Source: Macrostomum lignano
Taxonomy: Eukaryota
NCBI GenBank assembly: GCA_002269645.1
Contig: NIVC01000227.1
Coordinates: 310,001 to 374,000, forward strand
Reading direction: 5' to 3'
Length of the DNA stretch: 64,000 nt
In this document: positions 24,001 to 37,644 of the stretch, piece by piece
Layout of the letters: every line of letters starts with the position of its first letter
How positions within the stretch are numbered: position 1 is the first letter of the stretch
Made by a program: the position numbers and the translations under genes
The notes under the pieces: generated by a model
Told to the model about the DNA's origin: nothing
Databases searched by the model: none
Seen by the model: only the letters and a program-made list of their open reading frames with translations

Positions 24001-27000
24001 AAATAAATGTGACTGCACTTGAACTCGAGCATGGGCCGCTGACACATCAGACCGCTGCGTTAGACCACTGGGCTACGCCCCCCCCTCTTTCACTCCTTTT
24101 TTACACTATAGTTTCTGTCTTGGAAGCAACTTTCTTTGATAAATCTAAAAATATTGTGTTTTGACCTTGTATTTTGTAAACGAAAAACCGACATTTGAAA
24201 CTATACTTCCCACAATCATTAAGACCGATCTCTGTTTGCTTTGAAAGCAGGAAGTACAATACGTTAAAGAGTACATAAAGAGTAAACAGTAAAGACTCTT
24301 GATATCTGATAAAATTCATTTTAAATTTGCGCTATAAAGTAACTAGATTTCTTTAAATATGTGGTAAAAAGACAATCCTGACTGCCGACAATTCAGATTA
24401 GGGTCTGGGCTATTGGGTCGGCGGTCAAATGTTGTAAACTCCGAGTTTAACATTCAAGCGTACCATTTTTAAATAGCATATAGCATTTTTTCTAAAAGGA
24501 CCATTTTTCGTTAATATAGTGTTCACTGCATCTATTAAAAAGGTGCATTTAAATTTTCGTTCTTGGTGTCTTTTAAACTGCAAAAATTCCATTTGCTGAC
24601 TTCACGAGTTATAAATTTTCCAGGAAAAGCGTCCAGAATCGCTGTCTAGAATTCATCCGAGCCTCAAAACCCAATATGGGTGGCACAAATCTTTCTAATT
24701 ACCTGGCTTACCTGGCTCAACTGCGCGAATTCGGACCGCACGCGGTGCTGCTGATTTCTGACGGACACTACGAAGCGAAAGAGGCTACACTGGCTGTCGC
24801 CGCTTCAGGTGCTAACAAGCACCTGCGTTTGCTGGCCTGCTCGGTTGGACCCTCGCCAGACCGGCACCGGCTCCGATCGCTGGCCGGAGCTGCCGGTTCC
24901 GGCGGTTCCGTGGAATTTTTCGACCCGGCCAGACGTTCAAAATGGTCTGCATTGGCCGACGAGCTGATTGCTCGGCTCACCGCGCCGGCGCTTACCGAGC
25001 TCAGCGTTGAGTGGCATCTTGACGACGATGATGACAACAGTGACAGTCAGGAGTTGTCTGTAGTGCGCCAAGCGCCTGCTTGTCCGTCGGCTCTGTTCAA
25101 CGGTCAGCGCTTGATTGTCTATGGCTTGATGCCGCGCGAAGGTCGCGGATGTCAACGAGCGACACTGCATGCCAAAGCTGGCGACTGTCGAGTCAGCTGC
25201 ACGGTGTTCACTAGCGAGCTATGCTTTACCACCGGCTCCATGGTGCACGCCCTGGCTGCTAGGAGCCTCATTGCCGACTGGGAGGCTGGCAGCTTGGATA
25301 CCGATCCGGCTCTGCATCAGGTAACTAAAAAGTCGGAAAAGTCGGTAGAGTTAAATCGGAGAGTTTCTAAGAAAAGATGATTTAATATAAATGAAGTTCT
25401 GACTTGAGAAACTGTCGCAACTCATGGCGACATGCAGTCATTTAAAGAGCCAAGCAGTTCTGACCCCCGTGGTTGGCTCTTGTGTTGTTGGCGTGATGTG
25501 CGGTCGCGCACATAATCGAACCTGGGGTCTTTGGTGCGAAAGTCAGATGCGTTCACCACTGAAGTTATTCTCGTATTAGGTTCACAATAAACGTATTGGT
25601 AGAGAGCTATAAAAATAGGTATACTCATTTGAGAGTTCAAAGGTGACAAATTAGCAAACCCAATCAAATTTACAGCTGAAGCGACTGGAGCAGAAGGCCA
25701 ACCTGGTTCAATTATCGATTCGCTACTCAGTGGCTTGCCAATTTACCAGCTTCGTAGCGGTTGAGGATCGTGAAAAGGTAGATGAAATCGTTATCCTTAT
25801 GATATAGTAGCACACTTTCACAATATACTAAATCTCTAAGGTTTGTCTGACCGGTATTGTTATATACTAATTGTAAATGCTATCTATTTCTGACAGGACG
25901 AAAAATTTGAATCGGACATGACTGGCCGATTGCAAACTTTGCTAGACGACGAGAAGGTTGATATCTTAGCCACACAGGGCTGGGAACCGATCAAGGAGGC
26001 TGGCGACGGGCTTGTGAGTTTGTTAGATGACGAGGCATTTGTCCCAATTTTTTACCTCTTTATAAGGAAGGAGTTGACGAGGCATTTTTCCTTCTCGTAA
26101 AGTAAACTTTATAATGACGCAGAATTAAAAAGAACTCAATATGGATAGTTACTCTCATAATGACTCGTCTAAATTTTTTAGGCGGAAATTCTCGCGCAAA
26201 TTGCCGACGGTATCATTGATGGTCAGGAGTTGTCAAACACCGGAAAGAGCGAAGAAGCTCTTCGGCTGTTTGACGATCTGGAAGCTTCGCTGCTTTTGGC
26301 CGGCGTTCACGACAAGCACCCGGTGGTGCTGTCTGTTAAACAGAATCGGAAAGCCGCACAAATGCGGCAAGCTGATGCTAAATGTGAGTCTGAGATTTTT
26401 TTTCGATGTTATTGCTTGTTAGATTTTTTATTTAGACAAAAAATTGTACAGAAATAGCCTGTTCATTCCGCAGCTCTTCCATCTAAATTCACCGTCAAAG
26501 TGAGAACGCTCACTAGCGAAGAGTTCACAGTTAGCCTTACGCCCAATCAAAATATTCTTGAGCTCAAGGAGGCAATAAGCGAACGGCAGCGCATCCCAGT
26601 GGATCAGATTCGTTTAGTTGCTGACGGAAAGCAGCTGGAATCAGACTGGACTGTTGCCAGTGCAGGGCTGACGCCGGGCTGCACCGTTCACCTGGTGATG
26701 CGTCTACGCGGCGGACGTGGCCCTTCACCAGAGGCCGAAAAAGCTGTCAAACCAACCGAGGCTGCTAAAAAAATGAAACGGCGAAAAATAAAACGTGAGA
26801 AAAATTTGAAGGAAACCTTTGAGCTTAATTCTGCTACCTGTTCCTATTGTGTCTGCCGTCTCCAATGCTGTTGTGTCTGCTGTCTCCAATCCTGTTGTGT
26901 CTGCTGTCTCCAATCTGTTGTCTGCTGTCTCCAATCCTGTTGTGTCTGCTGTCTCCAATCTTGTTGTGTCTGCTGTCTCCAATCTTGTTGTGTCTGCTGT

Positions 27001-37644: not shown

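Follow-up and report, generated by a model that had tools for sequence, protein, structure and literature searches.

The window, that is, the whole stretch of 64 kb that was analysed, carries a predicted PARP4 gene of the flatworm Macrostomum lignano. Splicing at canonical sites joins 22 GT-AG exons of the plus strand (20036-37644) into one frame of 1970 aa without an internal stop; its stop codon lies at 37644. A first-pass annotation of this DNA had described a single PARP4 gene with an intact H-Y-E triad, in which fragments of ubiquitin, actin and HSP70 follow the vWA block in frame and precede the MVP-binding end. The single predicted open frame with its canonical sites agrees with this, and all the pieces it listed were found in place on the plus strand. 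No second PARP4 copy was detected by tblastn within the 64-kb window. The features of the locus are as follows.

20036-20325, plus strand: PARP catalytic exon 1, with the H of H-Y-E in LLFHGSS (Pfam PARP, E 3.3e-7; ortholog alignment; identical to the start of UniProt model P0007)
20969-21566, plus strand: PARP catalytic exon 2, with Y in GIYFAD and E in DREFAVF, and a linker to VIT (Pfam PARP, E 1.6e-11; ortholog alignment; GT-AG junction in phase 2)
22052-22555, plus strand: VIT exon (Pfam VIT, E 1.4e-32)
23491-23885, plus strand: vWA exon 1, with the MIDAS start DCSRSM (weak Pfam VWA_3 match; aligns to the ortholog vWA; 100% match to P0007)
24624-25320, plus strand: vWA exon 2 and ITIH-like continuation (weak Pfam VWA_3 match; aligns to orthologs and P0007)
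25676-26013, plus strand: two small post-vWA exons, 25676-25777 and 25897-26013 (a conserved motif fits the family consensus YSIVTQFTSFVA(I/V)E; canonical splice sites)
26182-26383, plus strand: exon T, a helical hairpin, the first exon ending in phase 1 (weak PPR/TPR-type matches; present in P0007 and P0157)
26474-26794, plus strand: ubiquitin-like module of 76 aa and Lys-rich linker, phase 1-1 (Pfam ubiquitin)
26842-27722, no strand assigned: intronic minisatellite array (self-BLAST; reverse complement at 29681-30936, 87-92% identity)
27786-28046, plus strand: acidic lead-in and actin fragment including the D-loop (ACTB 3-58), phase 1-1 (BLASTP against ACTB; present in P0007 and P0157)
29080-31309, plus strand: exons A1 (29080-29199), B0 (29473-29562) and A2 (31217-31309), Ser/acid-rich units with the first P-stalk-tail-like motif (segmental duplication; B0/B1/B2 alignment; canonical phase 1-1 sites; present in P0007)
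31557-34946, plus strand: exons B1 (31557-31655), C1 (32644-32790), B2 (33692-33793), C2 (34486-34611) and C3 (34794-34946), with two further P-stalk-tail-like motifs and the C unit in triplicate (duplications of 73-83% identity)
35278-35394, plus strand: exon D, a short unit, phase 1-1 (splice-site listing; frame kept)
35525-36279, plus strand: HSP70 exon, with a Pro/Gln- and FG-containing lead-in, the interdomain linker DLLLLDV, SBD-beta and an acidic tail (Pfam HSP70; aligned with HSPA8)
36475-36667, plus strand: exon F, a helical/acidic connector, phase 0 to 1 (canonical sites; frame kept)
37214-37644, plus strand: exon G, the C-terminal MVP-interacting (MINT/MVPID) domain and the stop codon (profile of ortholog C-termini)

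The PARP domain occupies a mid-protein position, and its H, Y and E align with those of lemur, Nematostella and oyster PARP4. VIT and then vWA directly follow the catalytic domain, the arrangement of clade 5 PARPs. The VWA_3 matches are split over two exons, each below the curated cut-off, and the region aligns over about 300 residues with about 110 ortholog vWAs. Exon F has no family match in Pfam or PDB. A single-sequence PDB search with exon G was also without a match; the profile of ortholog C-termini matches this last exon colinearly at 22.4 bits (E 4.6e-6), against a maximum of 10.8 bits among 2000 shuffles. The match covers residues 1845-1937 of an earlier 1940-aa model (model2), which lacked exon B0. 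Pfam revealed no NB-ARC, NACHT or TIR domain in the predicted protein. As judged from these alignments, the locus is the Macrostomum lignano ortholog of the vault PARP4 with an active-looking H-Y-E ADP-ribosyltransferase. With 11 ortholog N-termini as tblastn queries, no N-terminal BRCT, WGR or helical exons were found upstream of 20015 in the window, and both UniProt models begin at the same exon (20036) as the present one. Such exons may be located beyond the window, have diverged too far to be detected or have been lost, and this PARP4 copy may be N-terminally truncated.

Of the module exons, the two UniProt models of the same species, P0007 and P0157, contain those for actin and A/B; the ubiquitin-like exon is passed over, and neither model reaches the HSP70 exon or anything else downstream of exon B1. 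P0007 independently uses the same junction from exon T to the actin exon with the ubiquitin exon left out. Twelve successive exons of the linker are in phase 1-1. Such a run is, on the predicted exon boundaries, an exon-shuffling signature and would let exons be freely included or skipped. Exon frames of 87, 107 and 251 open codons on one strand and in compatible phases are far beyond chance. A frame of 720 codons (35482-37641) is open across two introns. The introns of the gene are full of repeats. Self-BLAST showed that inverted arrays of about 0.9-1.2 kb bracket the actin, A1 and B0 exons.

The ubiquitin-like exon was described beforehand as a 76-aa domain ending in LRGG, and the Pfam ubiquitin profile confirms it over its full length (positions 1-72 of 72) with E 4.9e-19 and 68.3 bits against a cut-off of 25.4; the C-terminus reads LRLRGG. 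Its identity is 39% with ubiquitin itself and 49% with the counterpart module in Sinanodonta PARP4. The flatworm module keeps L8, Q40, R42, K48, H68, V70, R72, R74 and GG. The ubiquitin modules of the family keep L8, Q40, R42, I44 (or V), H68, V70 and RLRGG, and often lose K48 and K63. Pro follows GG in 6 of the 12 aligned modules and GG is lost in three others, which suggests selection on the processing of the Ub-X bond.

The actin fragment, earlier placed at about residues 5-58, was located by BLASTP at residues 3-58 of human ACTB with 58% identity (E 4e-18); the Pfam Actin profile did not match this exon, the fragment being too short. There is no complete actin fold with nucleotide-binding loops, since only residues 3-58 are present, and G15 of phosphate loop 1 (the nucleotide loop) is replaced. 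Identity is concentrated in the D-loop part: residues 35-57 are identical in 21 of 23 positions, and residues 8-34 in 9 of 27. Actin modules of five lineages have the same distribution (21-22 of 23 and 9-19 of 27, respectively). A D-loop so preserved beside such a flank argues against neutral decay of the inserts, an outcome that the first-pass annotation had named as counting against its bait idea.

The HSP70 linker and SBD noted in the first-pass annotation were likewise recovered. The Pfam HSP70 match (E 1.2e-12) spans profile positions 379-482 of 599, that is, the linker DLLLLDV and most of SBD-beta. With neither NBD nor lid, the module is not a full HSP70. It was aligned with the HSP70 modules of P0141, P0022, P0050, P0056 and P0101, and across the family these modules consist of DLLLLDV and SBD-beta only. 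We take DLLLLDV to be the linker of the cytosolic HSC70 type, that of BiP being DLVLLDV. The cleavage of the BiP linker by SubA, once offered as an example of attack on this module, thus does not fit. The lead-in of this exon also contains FG-type motifs, a possible nucleoporin mimic.

The reported TPR-like unit, exon T, retains a weak helical-hairpin resemblance and has no Pfam match; its assignment as a true TPR was rejected, as it was based just on summed weak matches to designed PPR repeats, none significant singly. The acidic repeats are indeed present. They form a duplicated exon series in the order A1, B0, A2, B1, C1, B2, C2, C3, and comparison with orthologs carrying MGFGLFD revealed the resemblance of the B exons to the ribosomal P-stalk C-terminal tail. 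The B exons of M. lignano are divergent, fail the strict MGFGLFD pattern and have no Pfam match. The label "P-stalk-tail-like" was kept because an acidic run, an FG..LFD motif and a DAPP context are common to them and P0127. The C unit matched nothing in PDB or in PARP4 orthologs. The C exons were also considered as a syntaxin or SNAP-25 juxtamembrane mimic; this was rejected, the profile scores against both being negative. The donor of exon D is less certain, with same-phase alternatives at 35308 and 35434.

For comparison across the family, an exhaustive HMMER search with the VIT exon as the query supplied 150 PARP4-family representatives. In a word-indexed protein search, the 605-aa VIT-vWA region retrieved six prokaryote-like VIT-vWA proteins and nothing else, not even a near-identical UniProt entry; the vWA exon gave no match, the eukaryotic PARP4s being beyond the reach of this search. 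Modules were present in at least 30 of the 78 long representatives, and 48, including lemur PARP4, had none detectable; a Pfam census across the family revealed them as well. The modules always follow the vWA, and none was found upstream of its end in the 78 sequences. The types include ubiquitin, actin 2-72, the HSP70 SBD, 14-3-3, the VAMP SNARE motif, the P-stalk tail, calmodulin, Ras and the eIF5A hypusine loop. Their carriers are Nematostella, Hydra, Mytilus, Magallana, Saccostrea, snails, a lungfish, amoebae and euglenozoans; the sequences of Euglena, Diplonema and Entosiphon are transcript-derived, and those of other phyla include RefSeq PARP4. Some modules are complete interaction domains, such as 14-3-3 in P0148 (4-222 of 223), Ras in P0069 (22-160 of 162) and the EF-hand pair in P0128. 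Others are fragments: actin 2-72 without the nucleotide loop, the last 45 residues of 14-3-3 and eIF5A 24-76. The VAMP modules keep the SNARE motif and have no membrane anchor; lungfish isoform X5 is without its VAMP module, which is cassette behaviour. As in the integrated decoys of immune receptors, orthologs differ in their appended domains, and the core protein can do without them. Module sets differ between lineages and turn over between related taxa. The same fragments with the same boundaries and in the same order nevertheless recur in PARP4 from cnidarians to euglenozoans; the array is therefore ancient and shared, which contradicts the idea of three independent captures.

The primate PARP4 linker was reportedly found by Daugherty et al. 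in 2014 to be under positive selection. In humans, the C-terminal domain anchors PARP4 to the vault wall. The flatworm ortholog has the same anchor domain and the same linker position; unlike that of lemur PARP4, its linker carries modules of host proteins, and no BRCT/WGR exons were found for it in the window. The first-pass annotation, which gave human PARP4 only a low-complexity stretch here, is borne out: no modules were detected in the linker of Lemur catta PARP4 (P0019), the mammalian ortholog tested, and the human segment between the ITIH-like region and the MVP-interacting domain has been reported as disordered, with positive selection there in primates (PMC10450202). Viral cleavage or PTM of this ITIHL-MVPID linker, with an effect on vault association, has already been suggested (PMC10450202).

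PARP4 proteins of such architecture have in part been described before, contrary to what the first-pass annotation supposed. The available passages of Perina et al. 2014 (PMC4245714) report 14-3-3, actin and ubiquitin-related domains appended to PARP4-like (clade 5) proteins of amoebae, Branchiostoma, sea urchin, Capsaspora, Salpingoeca and Acanthamoeba, and read the appendages as links to signalling, cytoskeleton and ubiquitination. These proteins share with the present one the PARP-VIT-vWA backbone and the position of extra domains after the vWA. The list in those passages comprises three types of whole "domains", whereas the HSP70 SBD, VAMP, P-stalk tail, calmodulin, Ras and eIF5A are found here as well; the fragment nature, fixed order, cassette exons and decoy reading go beyond it, and flatworms are absent from the carriers it names.

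Two groups of known sensors offer a further comparison. Integrated-decoy immune receptors, i.e., plant NLR-IDs (PMC4246468, PMC4759884) and mouse NLRP1B (PMC13037943), resemble PARP4, a candidate sensor, in that copies of effector targets are fused into one protein, differ from one ortholog to the next and are not needed by the core enzyme. They differ in that the PARP4 carrier is an ADP-ribosyltransferase predicted to be vault-tethered and not an NLR or similar immune scaffold, and in that one PARP4 chain has up to four or more different candidate baits, many of them sub-domain fragments. In the bait-region proteolysis sensors alpha-2-macroglobulin and Drosophila Persephone (PMC5823974), attack by a foreign enzyme on an exposed stretch triggers the response. 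The PARP4 modules similarly lie between enzyme and anchor, so cleavage would release the enzyme. Unlike these copies of intracellular host proteins, the baits of alpha-2-macroglobulin and Persephone are unstructured protease-sensitive loops of extracellular proteins.

The reading preferred here, tentatively and at somewhat below an even chance, is that the modules are mimics of hub proteins forming a bait (integrated-decoy) array for pathogen toxins and effectors in the linker of a vault-tethered PARP4. The mimicked hubs would be invariant, abundant host proteins, and the modules would be kept for their recognition epitopes and not for activities of their own. The baits would be meant for toxins and effectors whose action on those hubs is binding, cleavage or covalent modification. 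Upon engagement, the effector might be trapped, PARP4 might be cut loose from the vault, or its activity might be changed. Release by cleavage would follow from the position of all the baits, which have the catalytic/ITIH part on one side and the anchor on the other. TEP1, the TIR-like NADase and STAND protein of the same particle, is a candidate downstream executor. In humans, TEP1 supplies NACHT and a TIR-like NADase to the vault; within vaults it has been reported to act as a TIR-like NADase, with a suggested role as executioner in immunity (bioRxiv 10.64898/2026.05.01.722283).

Homology to effector-targeted host proteins, another mark of integrated decoys, concerns ubiquitin, actin and HSP70 in M. 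lignano and 14-3-3, VAMP, Ras, calmodulin and eIF5A in orthologs. It is established that the donor proteins of the modules are targeted by effectors. ExoU, ExoS/T, ExoY/YopO, EF/CyaA and cholera toxin classically use ubiquitin, 14-3-3, actin, calmodulin and Arf as their host cofactors, and among the classical sites at which toxins act or dock are the D-loop, P-stalk tail, VAMP and Rho/Ras. The bait idea is strengthened by the fact that each module appears to keep the epitope rather than the fold and that the repertoire varies between lineages. The actin D-loop is almost invariant beside drifting flanks, and the ubiquitin modules preserve the surface used in recognition, together with the tail, even though K48 and K63 are frequently gone. 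It is also strengthened in that many modules are classical toxin targets or cofactors and the linker is the site of primate positive selection (PMC10450202). The literature searched contained no prior statement of a PARP4-decoy, tripwire, bait or sensor idea.

The modules may instead serve as an adaptor or scaffold, bringing ADP-ribosylation substrates, cargo or partners to the vault by their normal host interactions and without any pathogen; this is possible, though on the unlikely side. The partners would be UBD proteins and the proteasome for ubiquitin, the actin barbed-end cleft for the D-loop peptide, translational GTPases for the P-stalk tail, unfolded clients and J-proteins for SBD-beta, phosphoproteins for 14-3-3 and t-SNAREs for the SNARE motif. 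The reading of the 14-3-3, actin and ubiquitin appendages by Perina et al. 2014 (PMC4245714) points in this direction, as do the complete interaction domains of P0148, P0069 and P0128, the coincidence of conserved parts with binding surfaces and the antiquity of the array. What also counts against baits is that 14-3-3, SBD-beta, calmodulin and ubiquitin are ordinary interaction domains, which could recruit host partners rather than pathogens; that conservation of the array and its invariant epitopes over hundreds of millions of years fits housekeeping binding as well as mimicry; that abundance and conservation alone could explain the choice of donors; that the lemur ortholog carries no modules; and that mouse PARP4 knockouts were reported to be viable and fertile (PMC2964712). 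An adaptor does not readily account for the many non-folding fragments (among them the anchorless VAMP), for a repertoire that turns over from one related taxon to another, an uncommon trait in a housekeeping adaptor, or for the lemur ortholog, which does without any module.

It is rather improbable that the modules act in cis, as pseudo-substrates or automodification acceptors tuning PARP4 activity, stability or vault loading, e.g., with the ubiquitin-like domain signalling degradation or processing and the acidic stretches accepting ADP-ribose. The array does adjoin an intact H-Y-E domain and is rich in Glu, Asp and Ser, and the pattern of GG-Pro and GG loss in the ubiquitin modules would fit, yet the recurrence of the same host epitopes (D-loop, SNARE motif, hypusine loop, P-stalk tail) is left unexplained. 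Very improbable is an artefact, in which the ubiquitin, actin and HSP70 pieces would be decaying pseudogene fragments or mis-joined neighbours in introns, outside the mature PARP4 mRNA. The UniProt models that omit the ubiquitin exon and all exons after B1, the repeat-filled introns and the 720-codon frame running through two of them would be expected in that case. Every piece, however, has a canonical acceptor and donor, a compatible phase and no stop; independent gene models contain the actin and A/B exons; RefSeq and transcript-derived PARP4 from many phyla share these modules and their order; and the D-loop is unlike neutral decay.

Even the adaptor reading would name partners for the obscure PARP4, namely actin, translational GTPases, SNAREs, chaperone clients and ubiquitin receptors. 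Should the linker prove to be a bait array, the modules of a given species could be read as a catalogue of what its pathogens attack. Integrated decoys, so far found in plant NLRs and one mouse NLRP1 allele, would then be ancient and pan-eukaryotic, with a non-NLR carrier. Together with the newly reported TIR-like NADase activity of TEP1, a bait array would give a concrete, testable sensor-executor model for the vault. To our knowledge, the vault is among the largest eukaryotic ribonucleoprotein particles known. A wider form of the bait reading, considered unlikely, is that the PARP4 linker is an ancient eukaryotic "toxin flypaper": a modular, shuffled array of ubiquitin, 14-3-3, actin, calmodulin, small GTPase, P-stalk tail, VAMP, HSP70 and eIF5A mimics inside or at the vault, copied from invariant host proteins on which effectors of bacteria and viruses depend as cofactors or which they attack, and whose engagement would lead to ADP-ribosylation, PARP4 release or NAD-depleting cell death through TEP1. 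If true, the vault would be an organelle of effector-triggered immunity, which would give a function to a particle that has been without one since 1986.

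The window is eukaryotic DNA whose short GT-AG introns are full of minisatellites. The PARP4 frame predicted on the forward strand at 20036-37644 comprises 22 exons with canonical splice sites and 1970 codons, the sole stop being at its end. Pfam matches in the spliced model are PARP on two exons, VIT (E = 1.4e-32), a weak vWA divided between two exons, ubiquitin (E = 4.9e-19) and HSP70 (E = 1.2e-12, profile positions 379-482). Human beta-actin residues 3-58 align at 58% identity (E = 4e-18) with the exon at 27786-28046. The Pfam matches, the actin alignment and the open spliced frame thus bear out the in-frame ubiquitin, actin and HSP70 fragments proposed by the first-pass annotation. 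The intact H-Y-E triad and C-terminal MVP-binding region it described also hold: the three catalytic residues line up with their counterparts in PARP4 of lemur, Nematostella and oyster, and the last exon matches a profile of ortholog C-termini, representing the MVP-interacting domain that in humans anchors PARP4 to the vault, at 22.4 bits (E = 4.6e-6; best of 2000 shuffles, 10.8 bits). The "acidic repeats" are present and can be described more closely as a series of duplicated exon units (A1, B0, A2, B1, C1, B2, C2 and C3), in which the B units resemble the tail at the C-terminus of ribosomal P-stalk proteins, an assignment of moderate strength. BRCT, WGR and helical-domain exons of PARP4 were not detectable upstream, at positions 1-20000, where long tandem repeats also occur. 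There is an in-frame ATG at 19997; the first catalytic exon (P1) likewise has Met as its second codon.

Twelve exons in a row, from the ubiquitin-like exon through linker exon D, are in phase 1 at both ends; since splice sites were picked for frame compatibility, this run is not a fully independent statistic, and the donor site of exon D is uncertain. Symmetric phase-1 exons are a classical signature of exon shuffling, and each can be skipped or included with the frame intact. The junction of the first linker exon (T) with the actin exon is independently confirmed by the M. lignano gene model A0A1I8HY60, which uses the same sites with the bridging codon TAT (Tyr), as expected from skipping of the ubiquitin exon. 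A minisatellite of about 24 bp at 26842-27722, in the intron before the actin exon, has an inverted copy at 29681-30936, in the intron after B0 (87-92% identity over about 0.9 kb), so that long inverted repeats flank the block formed by the actin, A1 and B0 exons and could promote exon skipping, back-splicing or rearrangement. At 35482-37641 on the forward strand, a single 720-codon frame runs through the HSP70 exon (SBD), exons F and G and both introns between them, because the intronic (CTGT)n repeats, read as CLSV repeats, contain no stop there; ORF calling of the prokaryotic kind would yield a spurious protein of 684 aa at this place.

The VIT-exon search gave its top match at 97% identity; this entry and its cluster mate both come from M. 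lignano and are named "Poly [ADP-ribose] polymerase". The UniProt models A0A1I8HY60 and A0A1I8J8J5 include the actin and A/B exons, skip the ubiquitin-like exon (26474-26794), run past the B1 donor and then terminate. They add two short Cys-rich segments outside the 22-exon model (29296-29382 and 31404-31457). They back part of the 22-exon model and are silent on the remainder. Their few residue differences from the window (e.g., SAHSAAF versus SAPSAAF) suggest another haplotype, or a paralog from genome duplication.

Searched exhaustively with HMMER, the VIT exon yielded a family set of 150 representatives; nearly all of those other than the two M. lignano entries carry PARP, VIT and vWA in the PARP4 order. 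The entries looked up are named PARP4 and come from Nematostella, Hydra, Sycon, lemur, lungfish, amphioxus, bivalves and snails, and from Dictyostelium relatives, Pelomyxa, Bodo, Euglena, Diplonema and Entosiphon. The set was searched with Pfam and with 11 sequences serving as probes only (human ubiquitin, ACTB, HSPA8, 14-3-3 zeta, VAMP2, RPLP2, RhoA, HRas, calmodulin, eIF5A and Arf1).

Host-protein-like modules in the linker between vWA and the vault anchor of PARP4-family proteins
Actin residues 2-72: Nematostella (79% identity), Hydra, Mytilus, Magallana
Ubiquitin: Plakobranchus, Biomphalaria, Sinanodonta, Euglena, Diplonema, several other eukaryotes
HSP70 linker and SBD-beta: Magallana, Saccostrea, three more
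14-3-3, complete or last 45 residues only: amphioxus, dictyostelids, others
VAMP SNARE motif without membrane anchor: lungfish Protopterus, Bodo, two more
Canonical P-stalk tail, internal (EEEDDDMGFGLFD): five proteins
Calmodulin-related EF-hand pairs: Bodo, one more
Ras-family domain: Pelomyxa
eIF5A hypusine-loop segment: Entosiphon

At least one module is present in at least 30 of the 78 representatives of at least 1350 aa, and none lies upstream of the vWA end; the counts are a lower bound, the census covering the best 150 representatives with 11 probes and Pfam. A loose P-tail pattern occurs 11 times downstream of the vWA end and never upstream, despite the longer upstream part. Modules are ordered Ub, VAMP, HSP70 in one retrieved protein (P0022), Ub, P-tail-like motif, HSP70 in another (P0141), and actin, HSP70 in oyster PARP4; in other multi-module PARP4s, 14-3-3 precedes Ub, VAMP, eIF5A or calmodulin. 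Lemur PARP4 gave no module with the 11 probes and Pfam. PARP4 of the lungfish Protopterus annectens (isoforms P0171-P0174, P0028) has a VAMP2-like SNARE motif, 68% identical to VAMP2 residues 39-78 with GASQFE kept, so the modules are not limited to invertebrates and protists; the lungfish RefSeq isoform X5 lacks this module, as a cassette.

The modules are unevenly conserved. In the actin modules of all five lineages, 21-22 of the 23 residues at 35-57 (the D-loop and flanks) are identical to actin, versus 9-19 of 27 at residues 8-34 and 2-9 of 13 at residues 58-70. In real actins hardly any residue of the three stretches varies; selection on the fold has therefore been relaxed in PARP4 and maintained on one epitope. 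Ubiquitin modules retain L8, Q40, R42, I44/V, H68, V70 and the RLRGG tail, while Arg often replaces K48 and variation is seen at K63 and K29. The residue following GG is Pro in 6 of 12 aligned modules, and GG is lost in three others; M. lignano has Arg-Gly-Pro directly after GG. Proline in this position is the one residue known to stop most host deubiquitinases. HSP70 modules consist of the interdomain linker and beta sandwich only, and VAMP modules keep the SNARE motif. The pattern common to these modules, as read from the alignments, is retention of recognition surfaces with apparent loss of intrinsic function.

In the flatworm, in two bivalves and in two cnidarians the actin module begins at one and the same residue after an acidic run, its ends in these species fall within about 15 residues of one another, and G15 is replaced by Leu in all three spiralians. 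The M. lignano ubiquitin-like domain is 49% identical to the Sinanodonta PARP4 module versus 39% to ubiquitin, and Ub, actin, P-tail and HSP70 follow one another colinearly with other lineages. These features argue for an old inherited array with lineage-specific loss, gain and duplication. They argue against the three independent captures envisaged by the first-pass annotation, the modules being a family trait.

The statement that no PARP4 of this architecture had been described was too strong: Perina et al. 2014 (PMC4245714) reported 14-3-3, actin and ubiquitin-related domains appended to PARP4-like proteins. In the literature covered, which leaves out most subscription journals, HSP70, VAMP, P-stalk, calmodulin, Ras or eIF5A modules in PARP4 were not found, nor were the fragment nature, fixed position and phase-1 cassette structure of the array; full text within this coverage gave no decoy, bait, tripwire or sensor idea for PARP4.

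Other features of the window are as follows.

10076-12017 (approximate), reverse strand, F-box/LRR-like gene
14306-16198, reverse strand, transposase-like 630-aa ORF with an acidic repeat
38638-41913, forward strand, transporter-like gene with multiple hydrophobic segments
44945-45658, forward strand, retroelement integrase-like ORF (by eye)
49049-54703, forward strand, large STAND NTPase gene with a P-loop; Pfam nSTAND1, NPHP3_N and NACHT, all below or near cut-offs
62497-63240, forward strand, secreted C-type-lectin-like ORF near the window end (by eye)

The transporter-like frame is broken by about 2 kb of a tandem repeat of about 20 codons, open in all three forward frames and probably intronic or a recent expansion. 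The STAND gene lies about 11 kb downstream of PARP4 on the same strand, has a long C-terminal region after the NTPase part and appears to belong to the NWD1/NPHP3/TEP1-like class, which a 2026 preprint (bioRxiv 10.64898/2026.05.01.722283) ties to TIR-like NADases and the vault.

The hubs represented by the modules are classical cofactors or targets of bacterial toxins. Because of this, and because the repertoire turns over between taxa, the likeliest function, tentatively and at somewhat under an even chance, is that the modules mimic invariant host hubs and serve as bait for pathogen effectors. We infer this role; what is shown is how the protein is built, that this is conserved, and that constraint within the modules is epitope-selective. 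All modules lie after the enzymatic/ITIH part and ahead of the vault anchor, so that a cut or cross-link within the array would alter the association of PARP4 with the vault. Two reports fit the bait reading: positive selection in primate PARP4 maps to the same linker, where viral cleavage or PTM has been suggested to affect association with the vault (PMC10450202), and a 2026 preprint shows that TEP1, the second of the minor vault proteins, belongs to the STAND class and has TIR-like NADase activity, and proposes an immune executioner role for it (bioRxiv 10.64898/2026.05.01.722283).

The main rival, possible but less probable, is that PARP4 or the vault recruits ordinary host partners through the modules, which is how Perina et al. 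(PMC4245714) took the 14-3-3, actin and ubiquitin appendages. Cis-regulatory or acceptor roles are unlikely. That the modules at the M. lignano locus are an artefact is very improbable; among the relatives, three module-bearing sequences (Euglena, Diplonema, Entosiphon) derive from assembled transcriptomes and others are RefSeq models, so the fusions are not artefacts of a single annotation. The PARP4 module array makes the question of the vault's purpose experimentally concrete.
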